DNA from: Chara braunii
Lineage: Eukaryota > Plantae > Charophyceae
Assembly (NCBI GenBank): GCA_003427395.1
Contig: BFEA01000038.1
Coordinates: 4,910,135-4,974,134 of the forward strand
Reading direction: 5' to 3'
Length of the DNA stretch: 64,000 nucleotides
Shown here: in pieces, positions 1 through 45,429 of the stretch
Layout of the letters: every line of letters starts with the position of its first letter
Position numbering within the stretch: position 1 is the first letter of the stretch
Program-made: the position numbers and the translations under genes
Notes under the pieces: model-generated
What the model saw: only the letters and a program-made list of their open reading frames with translations
Told to the model about the DNA's origin: nothing
The model's database searches: none

Positions 1-684
1 TCGATCTTTAACACCGGTTCAACGAGGCTCGTGTTGCTGTCAGCCTGACTAAACCGAGTGTCTGTATAGACGTCGAAAAACTTCTCGATGGCATCTTGGG
101 CGACCACCACATGTCCGAGCAGCCATCCTCGACGCCTGATGTCGACGACCCTCGCAACGTCAAACCTTCCGCGGCATCTGTCGTGGCTTTCTTGCCGACG
201 AACTCTCCGATACTGCCGCCGACCATCGCCTGCGGAGGGGAAGGCGAGATCGGGGGACGACAACATGTCACGTCCCCGAAAAAAACTGCCACCGGCACTC
301 AAGCTCTTGACGTGCTGGCCTTGCCCGCGCCAACTTCACCGATGAAGGAGCGGAAAGACAAACCAGCTAGTAAGATGTGACAAACGTCACTCTGTCTGCG
401 CGCCTGTGACCGCAGTGTCTGTGGACGCGGGGAGTTCCTGATGCCGGCATACTACAGCCACCACTCCTTCAAACTTCCAAGTACATGTGAACGACCATCC
501 TGTGAGTTGGTCAGGTCACTGGTCGTGTGCAGGGCATACGAGACAAAAACATGTGTATTTTTGTTGAAGCGTTCCGTCACATAATGGAAGGATGGTGTTT
601 CTTTTTCGGAATGAGTGGTGGTTCTTGTTCGTCGGGATCCGCACTTCCAAGGCCGATGCGTGATGCGGTTCCTCTTTTTGTGCC

Positions 685-1322
685 TCGATTGGAAAAAGTC
701 CATCGGGATCCTGACTTCGGAAATGTTTGGCCTCCTCGTTTGTGGCTTGTTGTGGTTTTCCCTTCTGAAGGGCGGGGGTGTCGAGGTCGAACACACTACT
801 CCTTTTGTTTTCCTTTTGTCGGTGTCGAGGTTGCGCGGAAGTATTCTCTATCTCTCTCATGGCTAAACGAGGTCTTGTAATTAGATAGGTCCTGCGTCTT
901 TTGTATTTCGTGGTTCTTAAATTGTCGTTTTCGTCGGATTCGTCTTGGAGTACGTATATTCATTTTTCAATTTTCTTATCCTTCGGTTGTACAGGGGTAC
1001 GGTCATCTCTCTGGATTGGCAAAAGTCTGCCGGGATCCGGACTTCAAAGATGTTTGGCTTCCGCTTCTGTGACTTGTTGTGGTTTTCCCTTCTTAAGGGC
1101 GGGGGTGTCGAGCTCGAGTGCACTAGTCGTTTTGTTTTGCAGCGTGGCTCACGCGGAAGTTCTCTCTCTCGCAGTCTCATGACAAAACGGGGTTCTGTAA
1201 TTGCATAGGTCCTGCGTCTTTTAGATTTCGTGGTTCTTTAATTGTCATTTCGTTAGGTTCTTCTTCGGAAACGTGTATTCATTTTCCGTTTTGTCTTTCT
1301 TCTCTTGTACAGGGGTAGGGTC
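685..1322. repeat. Imperfect tandem duplication, ~320-326 bp unit, 2 copies
   Basis: gattgg(a/c)aaaagtc...aagggcgggggtgtcgag at ~688 and ~1014; ataggtcctgcgtctttt...ttgtacaggggta at ~886 and ~1206. Each unit ends in a pyrimidine tract plus tacag, resembling a splice acceptor. Confidence 0.85.
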
Positions 1323-2372
1323 GTCTCGAACACGGAGGCCCTCGAAATATCCGGAACACATATTGCAGACAGTCTCGGGGTTGACGACAAAACACAAGGA
1401 CATGTTAAAGGCATCAGGGGTTGATGTCAAAATAGGGAAGAAGGAGCATGCCATTGCCATTGAGGAGTGTCTTTCCCTTCTGCCCCCAGAGAAAGGGACA
1501 TATCCACGATCTGTGACTAGGGGTCAGGCCATGTATGAGAAATACTTAGCTACTCGTCGTGCGATGAAGGAGAATCCTAAGAGTTCCGTTTCTCACTTCC
1601 TCCCCTGTCCTTTGTTCGATGTTGTGCAGTGCGGGCCACGACACCTGGAAAAGCATTGACTGTGATTGGAAGCTTGAGGGTCTTGAACGACATTGAACGA
1701 GGCTTGGTGCCACCTAACACTGTTCTCTCGACCCTCGACGATGGTCAGTTGCGAATTGCAGCAAACGATATTCTCACCCTCTCACTTACCAACGACAGGG
1801 TGAATGATGAGGTGGTCAATTTTTACATGGCGCTATTGGGAACGACCGCATATGGGATACATGACATCCCGTAAGGCCTTCGAGTCTTCAGCTTTAATTC
1901 TTTCTTCTTCGGTAAACTGCAACTTCAAGGACACGGCGGGGTGGAAAGATGTGCTAAAAACGTGGATCTGCTTCAATATGATATTATCTTTGTTCCAGTC
2001 CACAAAGATAATGATCACTGGATCCTCCTTTCCGTGAACTTGAGAGATAACGTTTTTGAGATTTTCGATTATTTTCCTCGCGTTATAGCCTATTCTACTT
2101 TTTACCTTAGTGTTTTCGAGTTGATCGTACAGTATTTGGAATGTCAAACATCACATAGGCGGTCATGTAGGAGTTGGAAGTCGGTAGCAACAAATGTTGT
2201 TATAGAGGGAGTTCCAAGGCAAGTGGATGAAATTAGTTGCGGGGTGTTTATGTTGATGTTTGCGACACTGTTGCAACGTGGCGATCGACCGCCTTTCAGG
2301 TTCTCTTGTAAAAATATTCCGCATATTAGATGACAATTGGCATCATGTATCTTGGAATGTCGTTGTCTTTGA
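1312..2372 (+). pseudogene. Ulp1/C48-family (SUMO) peptidase pseudogene
   Basis: ORFs 1629-1874 and 1941-2333 are in one frame, split by TAA. Motifs: VNDEVVNFY, FNSFFF, DIIFVPVH..DHW (His), IFD (Asp), PRQ....SCGVF (Gln, Cys). A TGA at 2331 is followed by further sense codons to 2372; probable frameshift near 1630-1660. Confidence 0.85.
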
Positions 2373-2899
2373 TGGATTCGATTGATTTGCAAACTTTTGT
2401 TTCAGAATATTTCATATTTTAACTGTCGCTTTCACAATGACATTACTTTCTTTTGGTGTTGCGAGTTTGAGTTGTCTTTGGTATGTTGACTGCCAGTCTG
2501 GCGTCGCGTGTTCGCTTCGGAATCTCTGTCAGGTCCGGCTCCTCTGTCGTGCCATTAAATTCGTCGCATTGCAGTCCTCGTTTAAAATTGTGTCCAGGTC
2601 ATCCAAAGTTGTGCATAAAATTCACCTCGAAATGATATTCGTGTGTGTGGTGCGACATGATGAATTGGAGTGTGGATGCAAGACAAATATCGGCGAGTGT
2701 GTGAGTGTGAGGCTCGTTATGCATAGAGTCAAAGACCACTGATATCACGTCTCTTGTGTGCATAGACAATCATGTACTTGTGACCGTCTGAATTGCATGT
2801 AACCGATAATTTTGCGTTCGTGACCGGAAAAAAAAACTTGTATGTCAAAAATAAATGTTTGTACTTCGACTCCTATTGTGACTGTTACACACGTCGAAC

Positions 2900-5710: not shown

Positions 5711-6219
5711 AATAATCCACGATATCATATTCAACTCTCACGACCTCTTCACCATCACCTTGCTACACACCAAATCAAAGTACTATACGGAAATTACAAA
5801 ATAAACGTTGTTTTCATTATAAGTGAAATTGTTTTCATGTTCACTTTTTTTTTTAACTGTAAAATGACAGAACGAAATGAGGAAATTATACACGAAATAA
5901 TAACAAAGCAAAATAACGACAAAGCGAAATAACGACAAAGCAAAATAAGGACGAAACAATGTTCATATATCAAAGCTTAGCAATGCAAAGTTGAAGGAAC
6001 GACAAAACAATGCTCGTATATGAAAAGTTGAAGGAAACATTTAATGTGACAGTCATGATTATACAAGTTCAAAACAATCATGCTCCCGTGTTGCTTGTGC
6101 TCAAAATATAATACAATGTCAAGTTTTTACCTCGAATGTTTACACTCAGTAAACATGTCAATCTCATCAACAAAATATTAACTACGGACTGTAGCTTTAG
6201 TCGCACCTCATTGACTTTC

Positions 6220-7025
6220 CTATCTAACCATGGACAAAATGTCAAATGATATTCTAAGCCTCATATCAGAAATATTGGCTTGTGAGAAAGCAAATGGAGG
6301 GAAGTGACCTCTTGCAAGCAAAGATGCAAAACCTAACATAAAAACACCACAACTACAAGGATCCTCTTGAGCAGGAATCCCATCTACTGATGTATCAAAG
6401 AAGGATGTAGGCCCGTCCACATGATATCTTTCATGAAGATTGTGTCGATGAAACTCCGCTTCGAAAAAATCTTCCAAACGTTCAAGGACTTAAACATAGT
6501 CAACACGAGGGAGAGAGTCTATGAGGTGGAATTTACAGTTCGGACCGTCTATGCTGACATAAGCTAAGGCCCAGTGATTTCCAAAATGAAGAGGGATAAT
6601 CACTAAGTCATAATAAAAAAGATCTGTGTCCTTCACCCATTTCATCTCTTCGGAATATGCGGTTTCAAACCTCGAAGCACCTGACAATCGAGTGAAGAAA
6701 AAGGAATTGAAAATGTGCACAAAAGGAACACTACAAGAGTTTTTATGATCTCTTGTCACTTTTGTACATGTCGAATCAACCTTGATGTGGTCATTGGTGA
6801 TTTTGACGGCTAGCAGGTACGAATTGACGACTTCGTCATTTAATCATTTCCCATCTTTGGCGATGACCATGATGTCTTCCTTTCCCACCTTCCAGCTCCC
6901 CTTGTAATCGACAATGTCGTATGCTTCAATGTCTTCGCTGCTGTCTGTAATTATGTCAAGATACTCCTTTTCTTCTATGGTGAGGCGTCATGTTGCTGAA
7001 GGAATTTGGAACGAAGGGTCATGAA
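6220..7025 (-). pseudogene. Second Ulp1/C48 peptidase domain, probably the terminal exon of the large minus-strand gene
   Basis: K*LNDEVVNSY, IFNSFFF, DLVIIPLHFGNHW, LIDSL, IPAQEDPCSCGVFM, with in-frame stops. An acceptor-like tgtttgtatgcag lies on the minus strand at ~7026. Confidence 0.85.
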
Positions 7026-7790
7026 CTGCATACAAACACACATATAAACAACAATGGAACGACTAAGACTTTATACAAAAACGAACTTTTCTTTATATGA
7101 TGTACGACGTAGACCCGAGTTCATGTTTTAGGTTGTCTATCCGTTTCGCTATCAGAGCTGCCATCCACAATAGATAAACTGCAACCTTCGTGATGCAATT
7201 TCTTCCCTTCTCTGAGGCTTATTCCAACAACTTTAAACATCCTTAGGGCAGTTGGCTTCATAGATAAAAATGTCATGGGTGTAAGTCTTCTTCTCTCTTT
7301 TTTGGGCAATAACGACAAAGTTGATAAGGCTTGCAAGCCACGACGAATGATATTCTTTCACTCTGCTTTTGCGAACGCACGTGCGTCGTTTTCCACAGTT
7401 CTTTTCGTCGCCCTGCATGTTCATCAATATAAAACGACAATGATTGACAAGACAAAACATTATGAGTTGAAGTTCAATTTTCCACATAATTGCAAGTAAG
7501 AGATACACAATATTCTACTTCATTTCTTCTTATCACCGAGCGTACAATTGCAAACCTAGGCAAAAAATTAGTTCCTATGAGATGAGTGCATGTAATATAC
7601 CCCCTAATCCGCATACAATATTAAATATTCCCTTAGAGATAAGTACGTGTTCACCTCAGTGGCTCACTAACACTTTGTTTTCAACACGACCTTCTATCGC
7701 ACCATGCGATGGCGTAAAAGGAGATTCGTCGATACATATCACGAGGTTGGCAAACTGTTGTGCTTCTGATTTTGCAATCATAAGTTCAGG

Positions 7791-10700
7791 TTATACTAGC
7801 GTATGTTGCCCCCGTGTACTTAGTACTATATAGCCTTCATCCTCTTCGATGGCCTGTACATTGACAGTTTCCTTTGCACCTGCAGTCGCGCTTTCACTCT
7901 TCATGTCCAGAGATACTTCATGCTCATCTTTCTCAGCTGGCATATCCAACGATGGCACCTCTAATTCTGCAAGTGCACCAGTATTATCCACTTGCGTAGT
8001 AACACTCTCGCTCACCAACACAGTGGTCGCCCAAACTTGGTCATTCGGAAGGACCTCCTCGACACATTTCGAAAGTTCCCCATGACTTACGCCCTTGACG
8101 CTTGCACCGCCGCTTGCTCCCAAATCCTTGCCAATTGCATCGCCTCTCGATCCCCTGCCATGTGCACCGCCGCTTGGTCCTAATCCCAGAGGCGAACCCG
8201 ATCCCTTGCAATGTGCACCGCTGCTTGGTCCTGATCCCTGAGGCGATCCCGATCCCTTGTCATGTGCACCGCCGCTTGGTCCTGATACCTTTCCCTCTGT
8301 TGCTTGACGCCCTTGACACATTTCGTGTTTTTGCAGTTCACCATGAGTTATTGGCTTTCCACTTGCACCGACGCTCGGTCCCAGGCCCTTGCCACTAACA
8401 CCGCCCCGTGGTTCTGATCCCTTGCCATTTTCACCACCGCTGCATGATCCTGATCCCTTTCCACTCGCACCGCCGCCTGATCCTGATCCCGATCTTGTTC
8501 CCTTGCCACGCGCACCGCCGCCTGATCCTGATCCCTTACCACTCGGATCGCCGCTCGCTCCTTTACTTTCCCCAACTTTGTCTTGAAGTTCCTCTTCGAT
8601 ACGCCAATTATATCCAAAAGCTGGACTTGTTTCTCGATCATAGAACTCTTCCAGTCAAGCCATCGAGATGTTTTGAACTCCTGAAAATTTTCTTCTCTCC
8701 TTGCATCCAGTCTTGATTGAGAAACCTTCGGATTAAGTCGCAGTAGTCGTTTGCCAATCTGATTTTTGGCGTGTGTGACAAACTTGGATTTTGGCATACG
8801 TCTGTGGAAGCAAAATTGTCACTCCCCTTCTTCTTTTATAGCCATTACCCTGTTCCCTCTCGCCAATGCAGGTTGGAAGTGGTGGGGGTGCCATATAATG
8901 TGATGACCCCATACGTCGTTAGGCATCATCGTATAATCGTCTCGGCACACAATAGGTCTAGGAAGCTGTGCAATGTCTGGAGGGATCCTGTCTCCAATCT
9001 CGTACTCCAAAGGCTCAGACGGAGGTTGTTGTGGAGTTTGCGAGCGTAGCAATTCCAAAACAACAGTAGGGTTATGTGCAAGTGCTGACAGACTTGCAAT
9101 AATCTATTGGGAGAGCATTGGTTGCACACTCGGACTAGGGCCATGTGCGAGTGCTGACATACTTGCAATAACCTTTGGGGAGAGCATTGCCTGCACCCTC
9201 GGATCATCCCGAACTACGCCGGAAGGTAGCGCTGTTGTGTTGTCCACCATGTGAGAAGGTGTAAGTTGCAAAAGAGAAGCGGTTGAGGGACGATTCGGTA
9301 ACTGGTCCGTTGAAACTGCCATACTTGAAGCCTCTCCAGAACCGGACGATGTGCCCGACGCACCCATCTTCTGCGAAGCTGAGCTACAAGCTTTTTGCCT
9401 CTCATCTGCCAAAGCCACTTGCAAAGTACCATCTTTACTTTCTTCTTCTGAGTCCTCAACATCAAAGCCTTCCCCAAAACAAGTTGCATAAGTTGCGATT
9501 GTAAACGCCCCGATGTATTCGTCGAAGTACATCATCTCCAAACGGTCTAGAAATGCAACTTCCGTCTCCGCTGGTGCCTTATGATACCCCCTCAGAAGTG
9601 ATTCCATTTTTCGCCTTCTGGCGACATATGCACATTCCCCTCTGTTTTGTGGCTTAGTCTCGAAAAGGAACTCCCAAATGTTGACGATGTTTTGGTCGAC
9701 TTTGTAGACGAGATCACGCCCTTCATCATGTCGAGGAGGCGTCTTAATAAATTTGGTGTAGTAACCTCCAGTCACGACCATCCTGTTGACGAATTGAATG
9801 AGAAACACGAACTTCATAAGCTCCTCTTCCAGAACAATGCAATGACGGTGACTCTTTAACAACTCCCAAATCAACGCCGTATGACCTTTTCCAAGGAAAA
9901 CAACCGCCTCATCCGCAGGACAAAAATGTTCCAATGTCTCCACCATCGCATTTGGCTCCCTTTCCATTCCTTCGTACACAAATTTCTCCTTTGGTTCCAT
10001 ACCTGCCATTTTCAACTTCGTGGGCGTGAAGTTCTTCTCCACGACATCATTCAACATCTTTGGCTTTCTCTCTCTGCACACAAGTGATGATAAGTCACCC
10101 GCCTGCTCGCCGGATGATCGATCTGCAGCTGGAGTTCTTGCTGGAATGTGTTCAAGCAAGGGAATAGTGTTGCGGTGATAATCCCCATCGTTGGAGTACA
10201 TGATGACAGTCATTCTGTCTGTGTCCTCCAAAGGCAAGTTCGCAACCTTATATGAATGCTTCGCCTTCGTTTGTTGCTGACGAGTCCACTTTAGAATAGA
10301 CAAGTGAATGTCCCAACATGTAACTCGCTTGAAAAATGTAAACTCGCAAGACCGCGGAACGGAGCACAATAATGTCCAATAATCACCACCCAGCTTTCCC
10401 ATGAACCTCCATAGACCATCAAAGATTTCTTTACTCCATATCCCTATTTGGGTTGGGCGACACAAATCCAGCACGGCCGTGCGGCAACTCAGATTTTTGA
10501 CAACTCTATACATTTCCTTGGAATCCATCTCGTCTGAAATATTGCTTGGTTCCAATTGGAACGGGACGAAAACAGACTTCACGTTCTATTTTTAGAAATG
10601 TATATATTTCGCCATGCCCGACATTCTTATGCTTTGCGAACCCCTGGTTTCTGATCTGCGCAGCAGCTTGTTGACAAACTGCACGAACTCTTCGGGGCAC

Positions 10701-13700
10701 TTCGCAGCAAGTGATGCTATTTTTTTGAAGCCCTCTTCTCCTTTTTCTCCTCTCTTCCAAGTGTAGACGGGAACGTTCGCACCCAATACATGTCTTTGAA
10801 ATGGCGACGGTGGTTGATCCACCTCTCGGACGTCAATCCTTGATTACGGTACTTATCAAACACATCGGAAAGGTTCTCGAAGAATGGTTCCGTCCACTCT
10901 GATAACTTCCTGTGAGGGTCAGAAATGAAGATGAAGTAGTGAAACATCCTCAACATTGCTCTTTCAATGTTCACCATTTCCACGTATGTCTCAGTTGAAT
11001 GTTTCCCGACACTTTGAGCAGCTCTACTTCGCTTAGGAGTCAGTATTACATTGCCTGTGAGAATGTATCGCAACAGTTGAAGCCGCTCACGCCTCCCAAG
11101 CGCTAAAAAAGACTTCCACGCTCTGATATCTAGATCGTGCAAAGCCACGAGGTAACCTGGTCCTTTGGTACCCTGAACCCTGTGTACCGGAAGCCTAACT
11201 CCACCTTTCAACTCAAATCCGGGTCCAGCCCTCGGTGCCTTTCCTGATTCACCTTGTTTGGTAGCAGGCTTCACATCATCTCTCCCCGGCAATTATCCAG
11301 CCTCCCAAGCGGCGTACAGTTGTTTCACCTTTTCGAAAACGTCATCTGTCGCCCTTGCCAATAATATGTAGGGCCCGAGGGCGTCAGACCACTGACCGCT
11401 CCATTGAGTAGTAAGGGACATGTCAACCAAATAGTTAATCCCGGTCAAAGGAAGAGCCTCTCCTGCAAACTTTCTATAATCTGCATTTTTCACTTTCGTC
11501 GCAGAGCCGCCTTTAGCTTCAGGACAGTTCGATGCTTGCCACAACTCTCGTATGTTTTGGATGACCACGATCTTGTGCGGTGGGGTATTCCATTTGTCCT
11601 TGGCGTTTTGGAAAGTGCTCAGCGTGCCGTAATTGTCCATGCTCTTACCCGGATAATAAACAAGCCTCGCAGTCCAGCGATCCAATCGGAGCTCATGTGT
11701 GATGTCAGGGCGTTCAACAAAACACCTTCTTGCCGCCGCCATGTTATGCTGACTGCTGAGAGGGTAGTAGTAGTACTTGTTCACAGAGCCGAGGTCGAAT
11801 TCATCGGGCAACAATCTCCTTGCTCTCACAATCCTCTCTGAAGCGTCAGTATGCATTGTATCATGGAGGGCAACCAACAAAAGGACAGGCTTTTCATACA
11901 ATGTACAAACATTGACACCGGCAGCTCCATTCATTCTCTCTCTGATAGCAGCCTCACCCGATGCAACCATTGCGTCATAAATGTCATCAATCATCTGCTG
12001 CACAAGATAACATTGATTGTATCTGGATTCCCCGTCGGGGATATCCAGAATTCTGTCGAACTTGACAGAAATGAATTCCATGTCTGGACACTGGTTCCCA
12101 TGCTCGTCCAACTCAAGGAAGAAGCATTTGCTGAGAACACCAGAAGAAGTCTCCGATGGCACATTTCGCAAACTTGGCGGCCTAGTAACTGTCTTGCCTT
12201 CGGCCTCTTCATCCGATTGTGGTTGTTCCGCTGAAAAAACGGAAGTCTTTTCCATGACGCCACCCTTTGCCGTTTTTTTCTTTGGCTGCTGCTTTTTCTT
12301 CGTGGCCGCCTCAGTCTCTAGTGTGCGCTGGACCCCCTCATCCACGGACAATAGTTTGAATTGTCTTTTCTGACCCGCTTCCTGCTCACTCCGTTTACTA
12401 TCCAAAGCACTTCTCCTCTCCTGCCTGTGCTTCCTCTTTCGCTCGGCGAGCCCAACAGCATCTGTATGTGCAGTCACAGCCACTATCTCGTGGTGCAACC
12501 CCCCTCGTGTTGGATGCACATCCCCCTCACATCCTTCGTCGCTGCCCCCATATCCCCTTGCCTGACCAACCTCTGCATCCAATTCGCTGATAATGTGCTC
12601 AGTGTCTTCATCCTGTCCAACCACTTTACTTGTTTCCCCATAGCGCCTCGTCATGTCACCGACACCCACCGCATACTGTTCCTGTCCTCCTGCTCGTTCC
12701 GAATATTCCTCGCCGTTCTCGTCATCATCATCTTCAAAATATTCATGGGCTTCCTCTGCGCGGCTTGGCACAGTGTAATCGCAGTGGTGCTAGCCCACCA
12801 AGGGGAGAGGTCCCTTGGTGGCTGCTGCATAGCGCGGTTGGCTGCCCAAGGCAACTGATGCTTTGGTTGCCGTTGGCCTGGACTTCACAGGGGCTGACGA
12901 CACGACCAGTCCGCGATACGAACCCTTCTCTCCAATCTGCCCAGCTTTCGGAGCCGGTGGTGTGTCGCGGATCGTGATCGAAGACCCAGTCTCCACGGTT
13001 TTTGAAAGCACGCATTTAGGCTCCGATATGCTGTCTTCTGGATGCACAACCGGCTCTTCGCCCGCAGTCACATTACGGTCGAAGAACCCGAGGACGTCGT
13101 CCAGCTCAGGCAACTTCACTTCCGTACTCTCTGGTGTGTTGAATACATCAACAAGCGACTTTCCATATCCTGCGTGTTTGGCCCATCGAAGAGCGACGTG
13201 TTTAACATTCAACATCCTTTCCCCTTTTCCATTCAGGACCATCGTCAACTCGAACATTGCAGACGGTGCATCTTGTCCACATCAGGCTACCAACCGGCAC
13301 AATACTGTCTTTCATGACCACGTATAGAACCAGGCCACTTGATGGTTCTCAGATCTCTACCACCCAGTCCAACATCCAGAACTTGTCCTTGTGATCAACC
13401 ACGGGCACATCGTCCCGCCGACCCGCGGCAGTCGTTTCACCAGACGGTTTACGTCCGGGCACAACGTCCACTGCAGATTTTCCCTCCCGAGGACCAGGCA
13501 CACGTTCCTGACCCACAGGCTCGCCAGTCATCAACAGAGCCTTATCCGGTCCAGAGCCCCGAACACGAGTCGATGGAGTGCCTATGGAAGGTGCACCCCT
13601 CGAAACCAGAGTGCCTGTGGAAGGCCCAGTCTGTGGAACCAGACTGCGTGTGGAAGGCGCAACCCGCGGAACCGGGGTGCGTCGGCTCTTAGCCTGACTC

Positions 13701-13804
13701 CCCCCTCCACCGGTCGGCGTCCCCTTCGATTTTTTCGGAGATTGTTCCATGCTCCTTGAACTCTTACTTAATCGCTGTTTACTTGTCTTCCCTTCTCGTT
13801 CCAT
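7791..13804 (-). pseudogene. Large decayed gene (~2000 codons): ParB/Srx-like domain, degenerate beta-class DNA MTase-like domain, Gly/Ser-rich linker
   Basis: ORFs 12790-13257, 11293-12771 and 10717-11292 share one frame; 10592-10822, 9104-10582, 8819-9058 and 8348-8797 share another. Frameshifts near 13350, 10790 and 8600. ParB-like motifs YNQC..., YYYPLSSQHN, LSTFQN; MTase-like EREP...EAVVFLGKGHTALIWELLKSHRHCIVLEEE. Confidence 0.7.
8140..8560 (-). repeat. Coding minisatellite (Gly/Ser-rich GSGPSGGAHGK-like repeats)
   Basis: Plus-strand unit gatcccttgccatgtgcaccgccgcttggtcct recurs about 8 times, partly at 48-bp spacing. Confidence 0.8.
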
Positions 13805-13967
13805 GTCTTGCAGCGTTGTCGAATCTGAAAGCGACACAGCACATCACCGCAAAGCCAAACATCAGAAGGTCGCCCAACATTGGCATCGCACGACGAGTAG
13901 AAAAGTGAAACGTTTTAGATAGTGGTAAGGTAGCGCAGCTCGATCGCGGCAAGGCAGCCCCGGAGAT

Positions 13968-14262
13968 GGAGTTCGAATCGACCGCGATCGTGTTCAATTC
14001 GACCGCGATCATGCTCGCCTTGACTCGACCGTGTTCGACGTGATCGTGTTCGTGTTCGACTCGATCGTGACGGGCCAGCTCGATCGTGTTGGACTCGATC
14101 GTGGTGGGCCAGCGTGACCCAGAAGATTGTGATCGTGCTCGTGACCCAGAGGCGTGCTCGCGATCGTGGCGGGCCATGGCCCAGCTCGATCGAGTTCGAC
14201 TCGAACGTGGCGGGCCAGCGCGACCCTCGAGGTCAGCTCGATCGTGTTCGACTCGATCGTTG
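13968..14262. repeat. Palindrome array I (ATCGWGTTCGACTCGAT family)
   Basis: For example atcgagttcgactcgaa at 14189 and atcgtgttcgactcgat at 14241; lies just upstream of the large minus-strand gene. Confidence 0.75.
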
Positions 14263-14901
14263 CTGGCCATCGTGACAGAGAACGAGAGCGGCGTATCCAA
14301 GAGCAGGCAAACAGAACACGGGAGCGGCGTATCCAATAAGTCACATCAAACAAGTCACATCAAACAAGTCACATCAATCGAGGCACACTGCAGCCGGCTA
14401 TCAACAGATGCACCGCTATCAATTCAGAATTCAAAGCCTACATCCATTATCAATNNNNNNNNNNNNNNNNNNNNNNNNNNNNNNNNNNNNNNNNNNNNNN
14501 NNNNNNNNNNNNNNNNNNNNNNNNNNNNNNNNNNNNNNNNNNNNNNNNNNNNNNNNNNNNNNNNNNNNNNNNNNNNNNNNNNNNNNNNNNNNNNNNNNNN
14601 NNNNNNNNNNNNNNNNNNNNNNNNNNNNNNNNNNNNNNNATCCATTATCAATTCCAAGCATTCAATTGGCAACGCATGCAATCGGCACCCACAACGAGCG
14701 ACACACAGTCTCAACGCATGTAATCGGCATCGACAATCTCACATCAAACTTACTGCTCCCATAACATAAATAGTCTCAGTTCACACTCTTGCTGAATAGC
14801 TCACATTTCTTACACTGTTAATCTCCCACGACCTCGTCTATCGTTTAGCCCCGAAACCGTACAGTGCGTCCAGGGATGAACCGTACGTCAAGAGCTGGGG
14901 A

Positions 14902-15672
14902 CTAGACAGGGTAGCAGTGGCGGAGAAGCGAGACACGTATCGCGCTCGGACGGAACCACATGTTCTGGATCAAGTGTGACCGATGGCGTCTCCAATGACC
15001 GTCACGTACTCCCCGACCTCCTCCCAATGCCGGGGTCAAATTTACCGTTCCTATAACCATGCGGTAACAAAATCGTGTCCCCGTCAACGATGAGCTCGTT
15101 TCTTGACACGTAAATAGCTGCCTCCGCTGAAGTCTTACTTCTATTTCTTACCGAAACACACAGAACCCTAGCGAAAGGGAAACGATATGCATGCAGAAGT
15201 ACGACACACTCCCCGTCAAGTTGTCCACGAAGGGAAGCGGATATTTCTCTAGAAACTGGTTGTATTTCGCACAGTCCAGCAACTCCTCCTTCATCAATGG
15301 TCCCCACAAGCGTGGCGAACACGACACGTTGTGCACACTCAACGATAAAGACAAGCCTCAGGTACGAAATGCTGCAGACAACCTCGGCGTGTGTTTCGTC
15401 ACGAGGATGTGGTCGAGGAAGATGAATGTCCCCCATTCCTGGCTGGAGGCAAGTCGATAATCAGACGCCCATGGGCAGTCTTTCACGGTGTTCTCCCAGT
15501 CTAACTCCGACCATGCATCGAAAGGCCTGCCAAGCCAGGGCACAACGCTCATCCAAGGGTCCGATTCGAAGTCATCTCTTCGAGCCCCAAGCACAGTAGT
15601 CACCTCCCTTGAACCCTGCATGTACGGCGCGCTAGCATTCAAAGGGAACGAGTACTCGAACCAGTGATCCAT
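14902..15672 (-). pseudogene. Hypothetical ~255-codon gene with two in-frame stops, unknown function
   Basis: ORFs 15358-15738, 15148-15354 and 14902-15087 are all in one frame; globular-looking, Trp-rich sequence beginning MDHWFEYSFP. Confidence 0.55.
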
Positions 15673-15861
15673 CGCGAATGTCCTACACACACAAACGATT
15701 GACGACCACAACAAACACTCAGGGAACGAGAGAGCCATTGCTCAGGTTGAACCAATGTTGCACACACAACAAGGACCCGTCGCAGTCGCGAATGTCGTAC
15801 ACACATCAAGGAGCCATTGCGAATGTCCAATACACAAGGAGAAGACACACAGAACGACAAG

Positions 15862-16830
15862 CGAGGCGAACTCGACGGCCATCGTCGAGTTCATCTCGAC
15901 AAAGGCCATCCGCGCCTATCCATCGTCGAGTTTGAATCGACGACGGCCAAGGCCAGACGGCTGTCATCTAGTTCGAATCGACAACGACCCTGCGTCAAGA
16001 CCTCTGGCCACTGTGGAGTCGATCCCGACGCCCACCACCAAGGCCTCTGGCCATTGTCGAGTCGAACTCGACGACGGACGAATCGACAACAGTGGCCAGA
16101 ACGCCGTCGTCGAGTTCGACTCGACAGTGGCCGGAGGCTGTCGTCGAGTCGAACTCGACATATGGCCTGACGGCCGTCGTCGAGTCGAACTCGACGGTGG
16201 GCCACCACCAAGGCCTCTGGCCATTGTCCAGTCGAACTCGACGGTGGGCCACCACGGATGAATCCACAAACCCTAGACGACCGTCGTCGAGTTTGACTCG
16301 ACAGTGGCCAGACGGCCGTCGTCGAGTTCGACTCGACAGTGGCCAGACGGTCGTCGCTGAGTCGAACTCGATATTGGCCAGACGACCGTCGTTGAGTTCG
16401 ACTCGATAGTGGCGAGACGGCCGTCGTTGAGTCGAACTCGACAGTGGCCAGACGGCCGTGGTCGAGTTCGACTCGACAGTGGCCGGCCGACCGTCGTCGA
16501 GTCGAAGTCGACAGTGGTCAGACGGCCATCGTCGAGTCGAACTCGACAGTGGCCAGACGGTCGTCGTCGAGTTCGACTCGACAGTGGCTAGATGGTCGTC
16601 GTCGAGTTCGACTTGACAGTGGCCGGACGGTCGTCGTCGAGTCGAACTCGACAGTCGGCCAGCGCCAAGGCCTCTGGCCATTGTCGAGTCCGACTCGACG
16701 ATGCCCTCAGGCCGTTGTCGAGTTTGACTCGACAGTAGCCGAGTTCGACTCGACCGCAGGTCGTTGTCGAGTTCGACTCGACAATGGCCATAGGCCTTGG
16801 CGCTGGTCCACCGTCGAGTTTGACTCGACG
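15862..16830. repeat. Palindrome array II: 35-bp tandem unit GTCGAGT-NNN-ACTCGAC + AGTGGCCAGACGGYCGTC
   Basis: Exact 35-bp period from 16321 to 16636 (10 units), with looser copies either side. Confidence 0.9.
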
Positions 16831-17731
16831 ACGGCCTCTGCGCAGGTGGAAATGCCACGTGGCAGCACGTGGTTGCTTGACGGGGGTTTACCGTTCTCCC
16901 AGGCCTCCGCTGCTGCCTTCGATGCGAAAGCTTGGAACTTCGGTCCGATGTTGCGCGAACCTCCGATGTACGAGTGGGAACTCCGTTGCATTCTGCGCGA
17001 GCCTCCGATGTGCGAGTGAGCGCTCCGCCGGGTTCGGACGATGTGCGCGAACCTCCACAGCGCTCTGTCGATCTCGACAAACTTCCAGAAATGGAAAATG
17101 GTGAGCCCACACCACTATTTGTACTTTCTGTGGAGGGCAGAACGGACGCTCGGCACAGCCGTCCAATCGCGAGATGTTGATGGTTGGGGTGTCCGGCAGT
17201 GCTGCCTGCGGGGTGTGGATTCGGGTCCCGGTGCCGGGGGGGAATTGGTGCCGCGGGAGCGACATTTCGGGTCTCGGGAAACTCTGGGCCGTCATCCGTC
17301 GCCTGAGGGCCAGGATCGGGTACGGGGAAAACCGGTGCTGCGGGGAGAATCGGTGCCAAGGGGGCGACGATTCGACTGCCGGTGCCTTCTGCGACTGTTT
17401 AAACGGGCTCCGCAGGTGGATCTAAGGGTCTTTTTCCTTGCATCGCTCCCCGAGAAAAGTACCGGTGCAGTGTCACCTTCGCGTCGACGCGACAGACAGC
17501 TGCGTTGCTGCTCCGATTCATGCCTCCTTTGACCTTGGTGAGTTCAGAATCCACACCGCCCCCGCCNNNNNNNNNNNNNNNNNNNNNNNNNNNNNNNNNN
17601 NNNNNNNNNNNNNNNNNNNNNNNNNNNNNNNNNNNNNNNNNNNNNNNNNNNNNNNNNNNNNNNNNNNNNNNNNNNNNNNNNNNNNNNNNNNNNNNNNNNN
17701 NNNNNNNNNNNNNNNNNNNNNNNNNNNNNNN

Positions 17732-17768
<37 letters not shown>

Positions 17769-17835
17769 TTTCGCCGTTCTTTGTTTTTCAGGACGTCAAC
17801 AAAATTTCTCTGACAGTTCACAGAGGCGTCCATCA

Positions 17836-18470
17836 TTGAGTCCGACACGACGACCGTCGTAATCAACACGATGACGGTCGAGCGCGGACATGTTCACCAC
17901 GTGTTGAACACGACCCCACCATCATGTTCAACACGATGAGGGTCGCTGTCATCGTGTTGAACACGACCACAGTGGTTCGCCACGACCCCGTGGTTGTGTT
18001 CAATACGATGACGGTTGTGTTCGACACGATGACGGTCGCTGTCGTAGTGTTGAACTCGACCGCGTTGGCTCGCCGCCGTGACGGTGATCGTGTTCAACAA
18101 GACGACGGTCGAGCGGAGACATGTTCACCTAGAAAGCACCGTCGTGTTCAACACGACGACGGTCGCGCATCGTCATCTTCGACACGACCGCGGTGGCTGT
18201 CGTGCAGAGACAGGTATCGAGCATGACACAACGATGGTCGAGCGCGTACATGTTGAACACGACCACGCCATCGTGTTGAACACGATGACGGTAGCAGTCA
18301 CCGCGTGAGCCTGTTGTGTTGTGCAATGCGATGATGCATCATCGTGTTCAACATGGCTGAGGCGACAGATCATCGCGTTCAACACAACAGTCGGCGGCTG
18401 TCCAACACAGCATCCGTCATCGTATTCAACACACATTCGGTCGACGTGTTCGAGCCGATCGCCGTGTCTC
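17836..18470. repeat. Palindrome array III (RTCGTGTT-S-AACACGAY)
   Basis: gtcgtgttcaacacgac at 18141, atcgtgttgaacacgat at 18270, and many degenerate copies. Confidence 0.8.
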
Positions 18471-19230
18471 TCGTGGATCGCTTTTGTTGCAGACTGTGTT
18501 TTTTTTTTCTGCCTTCACGGGGCTGATCTTTTACATCAGCTGTGTGTGGCTAGCAGTGGCCTCGCTATACCATATGTGTTGCACTCTATATATACCGCAT
18601 GTGATCCATCTAGCTGCAGATTTGTTACTGATATACATGTCTTGTGCCAGTGGTCCACTTTTTTGTCATCGCAGAAACATTTTAAATGGCTTGTGGTGGG
18701 TATGCACCACGGCAAGCTGCCAGCACAACTTTGGAAAGCATGGACTGTGTGGCATCTAATATACTGCCTAATGATGAATTTCCTCCACCGGACCTGCCAA
18801 TGTTTTCGCAAGACGTTCAAATAACTCCAGAATCTCCTGATCATAAAAGGTCCCGGATGGCTACATGTGAAGAAACCACATGCAAAAGTGCATCTCCAAC
18901 CTTGGGTGGACCAGTGAAAACCTCTGATGCAGAAGGTTTGGAAGGTCAGGGTAGGGCATGCTCCGGTGACAAGAACACATCCGATGTAGATCGTATCATG
19001 TGGGTGCCAAGAAGTTCGCTACGAGATTTCAAGCGCACAGGCCTTCTGTTTGGCGAGAGTGATGAAGATGGTTCGGAATGAGGTTCTTCGATGTCATCTG
19101 ATGCCGACAGTTCTCCAGACAAAATTGATCATCCATAAACTTGTGATAGTGATGTCACTGACCTCTACTGTCGCAATGATATGGAGAATTCTGATGTCAT
19201 CTCTTATTTTGATGACATTTTCCCAAAACG

Positions 19231-19862
19231 TTTGTCGTCTGAGAAGCGTTGTCGAGCGCATCGGCCCTCGCGTGAACAAGGGCCCTCCCGAGTCCCGACC
19301 ATGTCACGCAAGAGATAAACAAAACAAAATTCGTCAGAGCTCCTGGCCCTTGATCGAAATCAATGGCCAGGAGCCATGTGCCTTGGTTCTCCCCTAAGGG
19401 AACTAGGGTCTTTAACCCCCAGCAGTATCTGGCCGCTTCCCTGGGCCAGATACTTCTGGAAATGGCTGTATTCAGCCATTTACTGCAGCCTGCCGAAACC
19501 GAACAGGCGCAGTCCCATCAGCCCCTAGAAGCTTCTAGGGGCTGCACGTGTTCTACGATCGCGGCCACGTCCGTGGCCGTTATTTTTTTTTTTTCTGCCC
19601 CCTTCCTTACTTTTTTTTCTCTTTTTTTTTCTTTCTTTTTACCCCCTGGTTTTGCTTGTGAGAACCAGCCCGTTGCTTAACAGCAAACGGGCGGGGTCAT
19701 TTCACAGAGTCGAACTAGAGTCAAGCTCAAAGGGGGCTTTTTCCCCCTCTGTTCCGCGCGCCCACCTCTGGACGTTTACGGGACCAGGTTCGGGCGTGTC
19801 GCAGTCTGCTGCAGCCTGTTTCTCAAAATGAACGGGCGCAACATTGCAACCCGTCAGGATGG

Positions 19863-19923
<61 letters not shown>

Positions 19924-21205
19924 ATCTCTCTCTCTCTCTCTCTCTCTGAAACTTCGACAGTTGCGACCGTTCGTCGCGACTGAAAACAACCCAAAGCGCG
20001 TGCAGATAGTTCCTCATAACGTACCTTAAGGCCCAGAGGCCTGCCCCCGAAGGTTGCCACTTTCTCTGTCACATTCATTCATTCTTGCTCATCCTTAGAT
20101 GGCAAGTCAGCCCGTTCGTTTTGATGAACGGGCACTCCAAGTAAGACCACGAACATAAGAATAAGAAAAAAAAGAAGAAAATCTAATAAAACAAAGAATC
20201 AAACTAAAAAGAATCTAAAACAAAATCTAAAAGAAGAAAATCTAAAGAAATCTAAAAAAAATCTGAATAAAACGAAAAAAAACAACTTACCTGATTGCGA
20301 GAACAGTCGCCCATTTTTCAGCGCGCTGTTTGGTGCACTGAGGCTGAAACGCCCCAGTCACTTCTGGGGGCGCCAACTTGCGCTTCGTTTTCACTTAGTT
20401 TAAGTTTTTTTTCTTTTTTTCATTGTCTTTTTTTTTTTGCTTCCGTTGGCTTATGCCAACGGTTACATCTCGTGGCTGGCCCACGAGCCTTGAGATACAG
20501 ATCCGAGTTCAAGTCCTTACGGACTTTAAAATAAGAAAAAAAAAAAAATAGACCATTTCTCGATTTGTGTGTGTCATTCTTGCGCACGGGCCATGCTGAT
20601 TGTCGCGCGGCCAATCGGGACCGGACGATCCTCCAGATCGACGGCCAGATCTGGCGCGCCGGTAGCATCACGAACAGCCAGCTCCAAAAGGAGCTAGCCC
20701 AGGTGCGCGGTATGTTGGCTTCGATCCCAATACTTGCTGGGTATGAGTCACCTGCTATAACCTAGTGGGCTAGCTCCTATCACAATAGTGATAGGAGCTG
20801 CTCTTCTATAACAAGAGTTGGCCCAACCACTATTCCCCCATGGCGGGGCTTTGCACGCCCCGCCCGCCTATGGCCTCACAAGCTCTGCCGGCCTACGGCA
20901 CTGCAGGCCCTGCCTGCCTGCTTGTGGCCCTACAGGCGTTGCCGACAGGCCTTACACCGTTGGTAGGCCGCGTGATCTCGACACCGGCCTATCAACCTTC
21001 TGCCTCGATGCCGAACCCCGCTGCCCAGAAAAAGAAACCTTCTTCCTATTTTCCCCTGCGCCGCGGTCCTATACCTGACGCACCCCTTTTTTAAGCCTCC
21101 TTAGGCCCTGAATCGCGCGGATTAACAGCCACGCGACCTTATTATAGGTAGGTTAGGTTTAATTTTTAACGTTCTTATCTCCGCGCGTCCCTGCGGCATG
21201 TGACA
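19231..21205. mobile_element. Probable solo LTR (~1.97 kb)
   Basis: Flanked by a 5-bp direct repeat AAACG (19226-19230 and 21206-21210). Ends ...TGTGACA and starts (tt)TGTCG, so the left terminus is imperfect. Non-coding, with (CT)n at 19866-19947 and an A-rich tract at 20160-20285. Confidence 0.6.
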
Positions 21206-21794
21206 AAACGAAGCATTACCATACACATTCATTACTCCTGGACGCCACAAGCATTCAGACTAACGTTCAAAACTTTTTGTCTGACAGTCATAGGTCAGGT
21301 CTGAATAAACTATTGGCAAACTTCGTCTCATTAAGTCCTTCAATTCAACACAGAAGTCGGACGGCGTCGGACGTTGAAAAACCCCGGCAAATACCCTTAT
21401 CAGGGTATTTTCCCCGACAGCATTCCCGGACCCCATTGAACGACGTCCCCGTCGTTCACCATCAAAATAGAAGTCAGGGTTCTTCCAAAATGATTACAAT
21501 ACATAACAACGTTACAATCCGCTTAAAACGAAGTTGAAGCCTTCTTCGATTGGCAACCACTCAAGAAATTTTTGTTCCTTAGAATGGTACCGAAAACCCT
21601 TCGACTAGTTTCAAGCTACATCCACTCAGTTGATACTATCATTTATCCAAAAAAAACAGGATTAACCCCCTGATAGGTCTTTCGAATGTATCAACCTCCT
21701 GGAGTCGTTCAAACAAAATATGAATAATCAAATATATATGTGTAATAATTCATGTCGCAACCCCTTTTTTATATAAGTCCTTGAAGAGCGCACT

Positions 21795-22102
21795 GATCAA
21801 GACAGGTCTCCCTGTCGCAGGTATACTCTTACAAAGGGGAAAGGAGAACATTGATCAAAACAGATTTCAACCGCCGCAGACGAACTCCTTTATTTTAGAA
21901 GAGGACACTGATCAAGATGGTTATCCCACCGCAAATGAACTTTTTTCTCCCTCAGAAGCAAATGTCGATCAAGACAGCTTTCCCTGCCGCAGACAAGTTC
22001 TTCTCTACTTCAAGTTGAGAACAAAATGCTGATCAAGATAGGTTTCCCTGCCGTAGACGAACTGCTCTGATAAAGATAGGTTCCCCCGCCGCAGACGAAG
22101 TC
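21795..22102. repeat. ~57-bp degenerate tandem repeat, 6 copies
   Basis: tgatcaagayaggtttccctgccgcaga-like motif at 21795, 21852, 21909, 21966, 22030 and 22068. Confidence 0.8.
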
Positions 22103-22258
22103 CTCTATTTTTCATTCAATGACTAAAATGAAGGAGAACGTAATTTATGGCAGGTTACCTTGTCACAAACGAGTTCCCCAATTAATTTGAGTTGCACCAT
22201 GAAATTATTACAGTGAACGTACTATAGTTTATATCATGTTAGATGTTATCAATCTTTC

Positions 22259-23707
22259 TGTGATATGCGCCGAGGAGTGGTGTAATCCTCTTCAAAGGAT
22301 AACATCTCGACATCAAGCCCCGCTTTATATTCGAGGCTCACCACATTCCCTCCGGTTCCAATGTTGCGACCCCACCAATCGGCTACCTAATAGAGTAGAA
22401 CAACCCCACCTCCCATAGTCGAGGTGAGTGAGACCTTGACTACAAGGGTGAGATGACTCTGCTCGACGCGCGGTTGGGTCGCTACTCCTTCCCTTATGGC
22501 GAACAGTGGTCGCCTTTTCTATAAGCACCGTCTTGATATGATCACAATACCTTCCTCTCTTTCAATGATAGTGTAGTCTTACTTCCTCAAACCACTTAGG
22601 ATCCAGAAAACAACATCCCGCTCTGGACTAGGAGCACAGCTCCGGCGCGGGCCTCACTACCACCTACACAACTTACAGCTTTAGCGCAGAAGCACCATGA
22701 CATGATAAAAATCTCATATACATATATAACACAATACAGGTCTTATGGATAAAATATATATACACACATATTTCTATAATTATCACATCCATAAGACAAG
22801 CACATCATCCCAGCTAGGAGTCAGGTTGATCTAAATAAAATATCATGTATTCATGTACTTGTCTATGATGGCAAATACACCAACTAATAATAAAGAACTT
22901 TCACAACCATAGATCAAAATGTTTCTGAAATGGTCTCACCAAAAATATTTTTATGAGAGGTTGAAGAAAAATCATGATCCACACAAAATTACAAAATTCG
23001 GTAAAAACAATCGAATCAAAATTTAATCGACTTGTTTTTTTTCGGCTTTCGATCCCTTACACATACTTAGAGTATGTCCAACTCTACCACAATTCTTACA
23101 CACAATGTTCTTCCAATACTCTCTCCCCCTCTTCGCTCGCTGCCCTTGCCGACCTCCAAATTCTAACTTGGAAGAATTCTTTTCTTGAGCAGCTGGCGTT
23201 GAGAGATCATCAGAACAAACCTTCTTACTCTTCCTACTTAGATCATGTCGATCCATCATTAGTTGTTTGCTTCCTTGCCTTTCTCACTGATGCTTATGAC
23301 ATATGCTCTTCTGAATTTCTTTCATTATTCCTTTTACTTCTGAGAGCATAGGAATGAGGGTTAAATCCCTCTTCCTTTTATTATCCTGGCATTCCCCCTC
23401 AGACTGTAGCAAACGAAGTTGCAAACGACGGACTTGATCAAAGTTTCCATTCTTGAAATTTGAACAGATCCTTGCCCAATCTGACTTGCCGTTTACCCCA
23501 GGGATAAGTTTCTGCTGCTCTGCCTCAGAGAAATTTGTGAGGAAGGTAAGACATTTCTGTTTATCCGTTAAACTCTATATCCGAAGAGCGGTCCTTTCAT
23601 AGTCAAGAAGAAATTTCTCTTCTACTACGTACACATCTCGTTTGATATTCCTCAAACCCTCCAATGTAGCCAATTTATCCCCAAGCCAAAACTTCTTCAA
23701 CATGGCA
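22259..23707 (-). mobile_element. gag: Truncated gag-only LTR element: gag C-terminus, PPT and 288-bp 3' LTR
   Basis: LTR TGTGAT(22259)...ATCACA(22546); minus-strand polypurine tract gaaagagaggaagg (22550-22563); zinc knuckle CKNCGRVGHTLSMC in ORF 23023-23259. Confidence 0.65.
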
Positions 23708-26439: not shown

Positions 26440-27130
26440 TGGAAAATTACCCTCGTATGCATGCGCGGCATGTAACAAAGGCCACTCCGGAATGTGGTGT
26501 GTGCCCGGACTTGGATGGACGACATCCAGCACTTGGTGCTGCATTGTGACCTCTACAGACCTTTTTGGGATTGGTGGAGACAGTCGGATGCTCCGCTCCC
26601 TGCTCCGGATTCCCGCTGTGAGGATGACTTCATCCTCCTAGGAACGGCTGCCAGGAGAATGACTCCACAGACACAATTTGCTCATGCGGAAGAGACTATC
26701 AGAGGATCCATTTTGTGGACTCTTTGGAACCTCAGAAACGCATGGTTGAGAAAGAATGAGCATTTAACTCCGCCGATGGTTAGAGCTGAAATCAAATATG
26801 CAATCAAACAAGCTATATCGGCAGACTGGGAGTATCGGGTTCAGAATTTTTTTTTTTGGCCAAGTCTGTCATTTTGTCAAATGGTTTGGAAACAGATGGG
26901 GTAACTTCTCGGGCTTGGTTACTGCGGACACGGCTCAGGATTGTACACTCGTGATGCAATTTTCAAATTTATTTGTTTAGCTTTCTTGTTGAAGCTTGGA
27001 TGATTGATCGGTAGCTAGACTCAAGAATTTGTTGGATTGTATTTCGACTGTGGTCGGGATGGGATTGGCTGGGAGTGCCTTACCCAGCCTATAAGGCCAC
27101 AGTACAGATGTAAGGGACGCCGGACCCGAG
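26440..27130 (+). mobile_element. 3' fragment of a LINE (zf-RVT-like C-terminus and 3' UTR)
   Basis: CAAC...DDIQHLVLHCDLYRPFWDWW...ILWTLWNLRNAW. Confidence 0.7.
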
Positions 27131-38500: not shown

Positions 38501-38860
38501 CCTCTACGTCAGGCTCGGAACTAACCAGCAAACGACCACGGGATTTGATACGAAAACGGGACACTCGAAGCGTGCCCAAGCCTTTCTGTTGTAAACGACG
38601 GGCTGTAGCCTGGTGGGAGGCACGACAATAGTTTTTGGATTGAATTTGGGTCCTCTCTCTTTCCCGCCTTGCCTGCGCGCGCATTCCGCGACGCGCAAAA
38701 CGATTGACTTGCTCCATCGGACCATCACAGGGGATTTTAGTTCCATCTGTGTCCCCACACTCAATTTCCAAAAATCCTTGGCACACCCCATCTTGCTGTT
38801 TTTTTGGCCTCCTATCCGCACAGCTAACACTCCGAACGAGAGATAGCACCGGGCATGAGG
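35591..38860 (+). repeat. 5' LTR of element A (contains an N gap)
   Basis: Matches 47468-49893; lacks the terminal ~13 bp next to the PBS. Confidence 0.9.
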
Positions 38861-38861
38861 T

Positions 38862-38872
38862 TGGTATCAGAG
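38862..38872 (+). promoter_or_regulatory. Primer binding site (initiator tRNA-Met)
   Basis: TGGTATCAGAG immediately after the 5' LTR. Confidence 0.9.
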
Positions 38873-38997
38873 TCGACACGTGTCGGTTCTGATGATAGTA
38901 AGTCGAGCTGGCGAGAGGTAGGAGAAACCCTCAACTAACTCGTCGGAATCGCCCTGTAACCCGATCTCAGTCTAGTGCGGTTGCATCAGCAATACCA

Positions 38998-43060: not shown

Positions 43061-43120
43061 GTGGCACGAGGACTAATTGTTCTGTTCTACCCTCCCTGCA
43101 TCCTCTCCTCCTTTGACATC

Positions 43121-44720: not shown

Positions 44721-44843
44721 CCATCTTCTTCCTCCTTCCGATCGTCCTCCCTCTTCTTCTTCGGAAAGCGAGGAGAACGACGACGATCTAACTTTCTCCC
44801 GTCTTTCTTCCTCTTGTCCTTCATCCTCCTCTCCGACCTCGCC

Positions 44844-45326
44844 ATGAGTTTTATCACGGAGCGGGTTCTCGACGCACAGTTGCGGCAGCCACGTGGCCAC
44901 ATCTACGAGATCCGGCAAGTTTGTCACCCTCGGCTCAATACGGATCTCCGCCGTTTGATGCGATTCTTCTGCGACGAAGGTATCTGTGCCGCCGCCACGT
45001 TTCGGATAAAAGGAAGCCCTCACGCAAAAGTATTCGCGGAGGTTACTGCAGTTCATCGGCGAGCGGGTCCCAGAACGAGCCACGTCACCACAGTGGTGGG
45101 ATTCACCGGCGACCTTAGCTCGGTCAATCTGCTGCGGCATACCGCGATCTTGGCCTCGCTGCGTGAGTGGACGGAGCAAGTGTCCAACGTGTGGCAGCAC
45201 CTCCTCGCGCGGGAGGGGTATAACATCATCCTGATCTTTGCATCGGATCTTGACGGTATTCGCCGATCACCGCGCGAGCGGCCAGTTGCGATCCCGGCCA
45301 TCAACCCCTTCCCCCGTCCCCAATGA
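44844..45326 (+). CDS. Extra 3' ORF 1 of element A, unknown function
   Basis: Intact 160-codon ATG ORF between the integrase and the 3' LTR. Confidence 0.5.
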   Translation: MSFITERVLDAQLRQPRGHIYEIRQVCHPRLNTDLRRLMRFFCDEGICAAATFRIKGSPHAKVFAEVTAVHRRAGPRTSHVTTVVGFTGDLSSVNLLRHTAILASLREWTEQVSNVWQHLLAREGYNIILIFASDLDGIRRSPRERPVAIPAINPFPRPQ

Positions 45327-45429
45327 ACCACGATGCTCGTCTCTCTCCTCTCTCTACCTTTGGTCTCCCCTCGTTCTTCCCCACCTTCTGGCAATCCGAT
45401 CTTCACCCTTCTCTTTCCTTCTCGTTCGA

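Follow-up and report, generated by a model that had tools for sequence, protein, structure and literature searches.

The 64,000-nucleotide stretch of DNA analyzed here (hereafter, the window) comes from the charophyte Chara braunii (contig BFEA01000038.1, positions 4,910,135 to 4,974,134). Its minus strand holds, at 6220–13804, one copy of a gene whose predicted product carries a ParB/Srx-like domain, a beta-class DNA methyltransferase (MTase)-like domain, and a Ulp1 SUMO (small ubiquitin-like modifier) protease domain. This order, already given in the original prediction, agrees with the predicted folds and the Pfam Peptidase_C48 matches. The gene is almost certainly accessory cargo of a Sola-like cut-and-paste DNA transposon of about 18 kb. 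The accessory protein of this cargo-bearing transposon appears to be undescribed; literature searches for this domain combination or for such an element turned up nothing relevant, in line with the earlier remark that no description of the three-domain combination was known.

The cargo gene and its host transposon

The coding frame opens with an ATG at 13804 and continues as far as a splice donor located after 7655, and further putative exons extend the gene to 6220, as expected from the near-continuous minus-strand coding noticed before. The public gene model P0026 begins at the same ATG, and contigs from sequencing runs presumed to be RNA start at approximately 13780 and 13990 (extrapolated), near the predicted gene start. 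The predicted product has about 2,300 residues. The window copy itself is dead and makes no protein, with a total of 11 stops and 4 frameshifts. The large exon carries eight stops (12792, 11295, 10594, 10588, 9106, 8821, 7793, and 7658) and three frameshifts (near 13280, −8; 10746, −1; 8653, −4), and the downstream exons add a further three stops and a single frameshift. These lesions are mostly private to the window copy, the stops at 8821 and 6846 being common to some siblings. Such damage, within an 18-kb transposon, bears out the proposal of a decayed mobile-element gene. That proposal captured the gene but not the surrounding element, whose ends, transposase, ORF-X, and arrays hold the mechanistic clue.

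Sibling loci align to positions 5804–19249 of the window and nowhere beyond. The terminal inverted repeat at the end downstream of Ulp1 begins with AACG and occupies 5804–5830 on the plus strand, where four sibling loci lose homology; it has one change from the family's AACGGTGTTTTC. Inverted repeats of approximately 27 bp are present at both ends of the full-length siblings L008 and L007/L003. L008 is 18,015 bp long and flanked by TCTT/TCTT, a 4-bp target duplication, and L007/L003 is 18,207 bp long with the flanks ATAG/ATAA; the target-site duplication was read from these two copies, the sole ones having both ends. A DUF7869 transposase (E 5e-55) lies inside the ends in five siblings and exhibits three acidic motifs, DGMDQ, DNC..EN, and GHTH.D.D. 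The three Asp residues of these motifs, which we take to be a DDD triad, together with the terminal inverted repeats and the AT-rich 4-bp duplication, presumably fit the Sola superfamily. The Chara element differs in its length of about 18 kb, its two accessory genes, and its palindrome arrays, and we know of no Sola element with such cargo. Plavaka/CACTA, KDZ, and Mutator were rejected as the host element because their ends and transposases differ. A bacterial contaminant or prophage was ruled out by the introns, the eukaryotic transposase, and the many nuclear copies.

Only part of the element is present in the window. The 5′ stump of a divergently oriented transposase region is located at 18640–19249 on the plus strand, and siblings L003, L004, and L005, which match up to 19249, continue past this position into the DUF7869 transposase; the window element is cut there. 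The DNA that replaces the transposase half (19250–23700) had no match in any fetched locus, and the second end of the element is absent from the window. Elements were compared by pairwise projections.

The second accessory gene, ORF-X, is an orphan gene of the element at 15035–15740 (minus strand) that is 33–38% identical across subfamilies and distant families. A pattern scan located three arrays whose unit, the same in all three, is a 17-bp interrupted palindrome. Array 1 is upstream of the cargo gene (13987–14257, 5 matches to RTCGWGTYNRACWCGAY), array 2 is upstream of ORF-X (15884–16829, 22 matches with a 35-bp period), and array 3 is upstream of the transposase gene (17835–18286, 8 matches). 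All 35 matches in the window fall within these arrays, with 0.03 expected; because the pattern was derived from the arrays themselves, their placement outweighs the count. Two subfamilies, with roughly 90% and 77% similarity to the window element, favor different arms (TCGAGT in A and TCGTGT in B).

Domains of the predicted protein

The input to fold prediction was P0001 and P0029 and not a repaired version of the window sequence; gene pieces, natural sibling open reading frames (ORFs), and database proteins were searched separately. The ParB/Srx-like domain (11560–12138; this and all following coordinates of the gene are on the minus strand) was assigned from its predicted fold and from counts of its motifs, YNxRxL, GQH[N/T], and a conserved Asn. 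The model has a pLDDT (predicted local distance difference test) of 82. In a comparison with 48,161 chains, the top 8 VIA rows were all ParB/Srx folds (Z 4.8–7.7), and the best Foldseek E value was 0.01. A ParB/Srx fold is consistent with these results, with moderate support from the model. GQH[N/T] takes the place of GxRR in nearly all homologues, and the second Arg of GxRR is missing, none of 57 homologues having Arg at the last position. DUF3723 was the top match to the ParB-like part in language-model features (0.96), and the DUF3723 profile matched none of 60 members.

The MTase-like domain (9700–10660) clearly has a beta-class N4C/N6A amino-MTase fold in the predicted model (pLDDT 81), which contains a permuted Rossmann fold with the motif order IV...X-I-II. 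The model aligns with CcrM at Z 17.4 (root mean square deviation 3.4, 219 aligned) and with rotifer N4CMT at Z 15.1; Foldseek gave an E value of 6e-9, and the nearest predicted folds are phage N6_N4_Mtase clusters. CcrM, M.RsrI, M.PvuII, rotifer N4CMT, and Marchantia DN4MT1 have the fold and motif order in common with the Chara domain (Z 15–17) at 5–13% identity, but the Chara domain lacks their (D/S)PP(Y/F/W) and FxGxG motifs. In known amino-MTases, PP[YFW] stacks the flipped base. None of 49 homologues has PP[YFW], and the position, located by strand order in the model and not by residue-level superposition, reads D-L-C/S-x-P. Motif I is FLGKxH in place of the FxGxG that binds S-adenosylmethionine. 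The motif-IV Asp is retained in 47 of the 49 homologues, the motif-I Gly in 57 of 61, the motif-II acid in 58 of 61, and ERxP in about 57 of 64, in families that are only about 25% alike. Judging from its motifs and model, the domain is probably a pseudo-methyltransferase, although cofactor binding may persist. With both the catalytic PP[YFW] and the second ParB Arg lost, the protein as a whole is more likely a pseudo-enzyme than a marker of DNA. Given D-L-C/S-x-P and FLGKxH, an active MTase like DN4MT1 or rotifer N4CMT, the enzymes offered earlier for comparison, is not supported, and an active N4C methylase like DN4MT1 was rejected. In Marchantia, DN4MT1 carries TSPPY and is an active gene of the host (10.1101/2021.02.12.428880), whereas the Chara domain is closer in state to pseudo-MTases such as METTL14 and that of DIRS1 (PMC4738411).

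Neither the ParB-like nor the MTase-like domain was detected when sequences were searched against Pfam, PHROGs, NCBIfam, and PDB. Both had been proposed from the sequence, and both are found in predicted folds, clearly for the MTase and more weakly for ParB. Their fusion is real because a single natural ORF of 938 codons in a sibling locus (L001:9620–12433) contains the two parts; the metagenome contig L010 holds an uninterrupted ParB-MTase ORF of 1,419 codons.

The last exon (6220–7025) encodes the Ulp1/Peptidase_C48 domain. Its Pfam matches had E values of 9e-7 and 8e-10 for pieces of the window and 2.5e-17 for the intact exon of a sibling, and the His-Asp-Cys triad and the Gln are intact when read across copies, so the description of a clear Ulp1 domain was correct. 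The three stops of this exon in the window copy are at 6990, 6846, and 6492.

The remainder of the protein alternates between conserved and low-complexity regions. A low-complexity N-terminus follows the start codon (13400–13804), and a conserved unnamed domain (13000–13400; WxLDW...GG...GYG), present in 42 homologues, contains the 8-nt deletion near 13280 in the window copy. An acidic and then basic low-complexity linker (12140–13000) leads to the ParB-like domain. Conserved helical and middle regions (10760–11559), in which no fold was identified, separate the ParB-like and MTase-like domains, at the position where ParB proteins carry their DNA-binding domain. A second unnamed domain (8660–9010; WGHxIxWHP...W) is conserved in 46 homologues. 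The large exon ends in a low-complexity Gly/Ser-rich tail (7655–8660) with repeats of 33–51 nt, the number of which differs among copies, followed by an acidic stretch. Pfam, PHROGs, NCBIfam, and PDB sequence searches found no relatives of the two unnamed domains or of ORF-X.

Between subfamilies, the ratio of nonsynonymous to synonymous substitutions (dN/dS) is 0.12 for the ParB-like domain, the most constrained part, 0.25 for the MTase-like domain, and 0.39 for Ulp1 (Fisher p 2e-4), in comparison with 0.8–1.7 for wrong-frame controls. It is 0.17 and 0.35 for the N-terminal and second unnamed domains, respectively, and 0.22–0.36 for the helical and middle regions. In contrast, changes that occur in one copy only are close to neutrality (0.8–1.1 in the ParB, middle, and MTase regions). 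Therefore, selection acted on the element, and by these ratios all three domains were formerly under purifying selection. The pattern fits a gene that served the element while it was active and degenerates once inserted. Decay of the copies is faster at CG (0.048) and CHG (0.050) than at CHH (0.028), in keeping with methylated DNA. Within the large exon (7655–13804), private changes are skewed on the coding strand, with 295 G>A and 207 C>T.

Exon junctions and relatives

The junctions were located in an alignment of seven copies. Putative intron 1 (7413–7654) has a GTGAGC/GTGAAC donor, and putative intron 2 (7026–7185) has an AG|GT donor kept in all seven copies. Between them lies a putative middle exon of 76 codons (7186–7412), which is basic. 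The two acceptors had been placed correctly by the original prediction: that at 7026, where the Ulp1 exon starts, is invariant in the seven copies, and that at 7413 is kept in six. Because the two conserved donors and two conserved acceptors are all in phase 1, the frame is open whether the middle exon is included or skipped. Among public gene models, P0008 takes the intron 1 donor together with the 7026 acceptor. The middle exon has a dN/dS of about 0.6, indistinguishable from intron controls, and has a 1-nt deletion at 7357 in the window copy. Alternatively, it reads on to a stop near 7123, which is present in six of the seven copies. Skipping the second donor would, as read from the DNA, yield an isoform without the protease; the added stretch (7185–7121) would be hydrophobic and then acidic, resembling a SUMO-interacting motif, before the stop.

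The three-exon layout is repeated in the distant family L010, whose Ulp1 is just 21% alike to that of the window gene, and L011 contains two further MTase-then-Ulp1 units. Ulp1 persists downstream of the MTase, with in-frame splice sites, in several distant families even where Ulp1 itself is 21–30% alike, and about 10 public gene models of distant families, which are predictions, end in Ulp1. At the RNA level, the match of one low-depth contig breaks exactly at 7412, the 7413 acceptor. From the polyA runs came 19 and 34 reads; the majority were sense and fell on the Ulp1 exon, and none crossed a splice junction. The sequence conservation makes a protein-level join of ParB-MTase to Ulp1 likely. 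The proposed three-domain fusion is hence established in its ParB-MTase half; DNA evidence favors the further join to Ulp1, for which the RNA reads gave no junction.

As homology queries, two gene pieces matched only C. braunii proteins (54–90% identity). A profile search of 1.84 billion proteins recovered 197 relatives, many families being only about 25% alike; among 20 that were looked up, 17 are from C. braunii and 3 are metagenome proteins of the Joint Genome Institute (JGI), of which two came from the same sample. Well over 100 diverged copies form many deep families, and a quick tree was used solely to show these families. No prokaryotic or viral relative was found by sequence, and short-word searches of viral, prokaryotic, and metagenome contigs and phage records gave no relatives, an absence that is weak because the searches were short-word. 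L010, which together with L012 (JGI sample 3300064063) represents a related family, has an uninterrupted Ulp1 exon besides its intact ParB-MTase ORF, so it may be young or active. In L011, 3500–7300 and 7600–17200 are tandem units of different distant families, each MTase-like and then Ulp1; its fetched DNA contains no DUF7869 transposase and no palindrome array.

A second, distant ParB-MTase-Ulp1 cassette is represented in the window by its 3′ end (1–2400, plus strand), which lies tail to tail with the element described here. Its Ulp1 (approximately 1690–2360) is 68–74% alike to P0093, P0103, and P0062 and 30% alike to that of the cargo gene, and window positions 3–377 match the tails of P0096 and P0063. 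The window also contains a long terminal repeat (LTR) retrotransposon at 36774–48400, with repeats 11,018 bp apart, relatives of which adjoin the transposon end in L001 and L002. A block of approximately 11 kb that includes a non-LTR reverse transcriptase occurs twice (23700–34500 and 53400–63700, 29.7 kb apart, 92–96% identity).

A candidate anti-silencing protein and its alternatives

The best reading of the gene, which we hold tentatively and at slightly less than an even chance, is a VANC/KAONASHI-like self-targeting anti-silencing protein that would bind the palindromes as its candidate sites. The sites bound by VANC are short motifs that form tandem arrays in the non-coding DNA of its own element, from which it removes silencing (PMC5735166), and some VANC genes carry a Ulp1 (PMC13317346). 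Like VANDAL, a Mutator-like element of Arabidopsis, the Chara element is a three-gene DNA transposon with an accessory protein that has conserved domains, variable repeats, and, as in some VANDALs, Ulp1, and with short family-specific motifs in tandem non-coding arrays (PMC5735166, PMC13317346). In contrast, it has a DUF7869 instead of a Mutator-like transposase, terminal repeats, a 4-bp duplication, and a palindromic motif, and its cargo is built from predicted ParB-like and MTase-like folds. By analogy, the cargo would work most like VANC or like KAONASHI, a VANC-Ulp1 protein, without being a member of that group.

In this mechanism, the ParB-like and beta-MTase-like folds, joined in one polypeptide that selection kept while the family was active, would form the scaffold that recognizes the palindromes. 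The MTase fold, which lacks the catalytic motif, would serve as a DNA-gripping or cofactor-binding module, not as a writer. The protein would dimerize on the 17-bp palindromes upstream of the element's three genes, and the putatively spliced-on Ulp1, with its intact triad, would strip SUMO from silencing proteins there and keep the element's promoters open; the binding, the dimerization, and the SUMO target are what we infer. The anti-silencing half of the earlier suggestion thus becomes the leading idea, whereas its self-marking half is disfavored by the lack of PP[YFW] in the 49 homologues.

Several observations weigh against an anti-silencing role. The likeness to VANC is one of layout and not of sequence, and VANC domains had no Pfam match in any piece or homologue scanned. 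No DNA-binding domain was identified in the protein. The DNA fetched for L010–L012, which are distant families, showed no array but may stop short of the right region. A 6.8-kb contig in two runs of one study, presumed to be RNA, represents a copy about 92% alike that is unspliced across both putative introns and carries a frameshift. CG decay in the arrays (0.038–0.065) is as fast as that in coding DNA (0.047–0.070), so there is no footprint of protection of the arrays.

Among the alternatives, a transposition helper survives best, although we regard it as unlikely. The protein would load at the palindromes as ParB does at parS, spread or bridge, and unite ends 18 kb apart for the transposase complex, and Ulp1 would deSUMOylate the transposase or repair factors, silencing not being its target. 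The strong constraint on the ParB-like domain, with YNxR, GQH, and the Asn kept, the parS-like size of the interrupted palindrome, and the unusual length of the element relative to its short terminal repeats are consistent with this role, as is the resemblance in language-model features to DUF3723, a conserved cargo of the fungal Starship giant transposons. However, the arrays lie upstream of genes in mid-element and not near the ends, the ParB cytidine triphosphate (CTP) motif lacks its second Arg, and the profile of DUF3723 matches no member. Starships also differ in that they move by a tyrosine recombinase, and the likeness, cargo conserved in a giant eukaryotic transposon, is a lead only.

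An active, non-canonical DNA modifier is rather improbable. With altered chemistry, perhaps fed by the ParB-like domain in the way predicted for ParB-MTase loci of phages, it would mark the element's own copies. The retained motif-IV Asp, ERxP, motif-II acid, and motif-I Gly argue for such an activity, as do the phage N6_N4_Mtase proteins that are nearest in predicted fold and the ParB-linked MTases of phage loci and of some algae and fungi (PMC4738411). The replacement of PP[YFW] in every homologue and of FxGxG by FLGKxH argues against it, and inactive MTase folds are known from METTL14 and DIRS1 retrotransposons (PMC4738411). A similarly low probability is given to a separate Ulp1, in which case the ParB-MTase protein would end at the stop near 7123 and Ulp1 would come from its own or a rare transcript. 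RNA-run contigs that are unspliced over 7026–7654, the few polyA reads, which fall mostly on the Ulp1 exon, and the readthrough of the middle exon to a widely kept stop point in this direction. The conserved phase-1 sites that keep the frame open either way, the recurrence of the three-exon layout in L010, the start of the Ulp1 exon at an acceptor, and the gene models ending in Ulp1 speak for the join instead. Finally, a domesticated host gene, or a passenger without a role for the element, is largely refuted: one copy seems to be transcribed along some 7 kb in four runs from a single study, but every Chara copy examined is broken with near-neutral private changes, and the gene lies between terminal repeats in a fixed layout in more than 100 diverged copies of many families.

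A more far-reaching reading, which we consider doubtful, would place a ParB/parS-type system in a eukaryotic nucleus: a nucleotide-gated clamp, loaded at the transposon's own palindromes, would travel along the element with a retooled MTase fold and a SUMO protease and reset its chromatin. The Chara protein resembles the ParB/Srx proteins (ParB, KorB, PadC, Noc, SbnI, and sulfiredoxin) in its fold, its conserved R, G-x-H, and N, and its palindromic candidate site, and it resembles phage ParB-MTase fusions in the order of the two domains. It differs from both in having GQH[N/T] instead of GxRR, large insertions, and no ParA, and in being eukaryotic, putatively spliced, and equipped with Ulp1. 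Other giant transposons, such as Starships with DUF3723, may use a related module. ParB-linked MTases and inactive MTases on eukaryotic mobile elements have each been described separately (PMC4738411).

Counter-silencing systems encoded by transposons are known in few cases, and many plant and animal transposons carry Ulp1 domains. Because one element supplies a candidate binder, a subfamily-variable 17-bp candidate site, and an intact protease, the role of such domains becomes directly testable. If the proposed function is true, the Chara cargo would be an uncommon instance of a land-plant relative in which two DNA-handling folds of bacterial or phage type have been put to new use, and it would be a possible source of sequence-specific chromatin tools.

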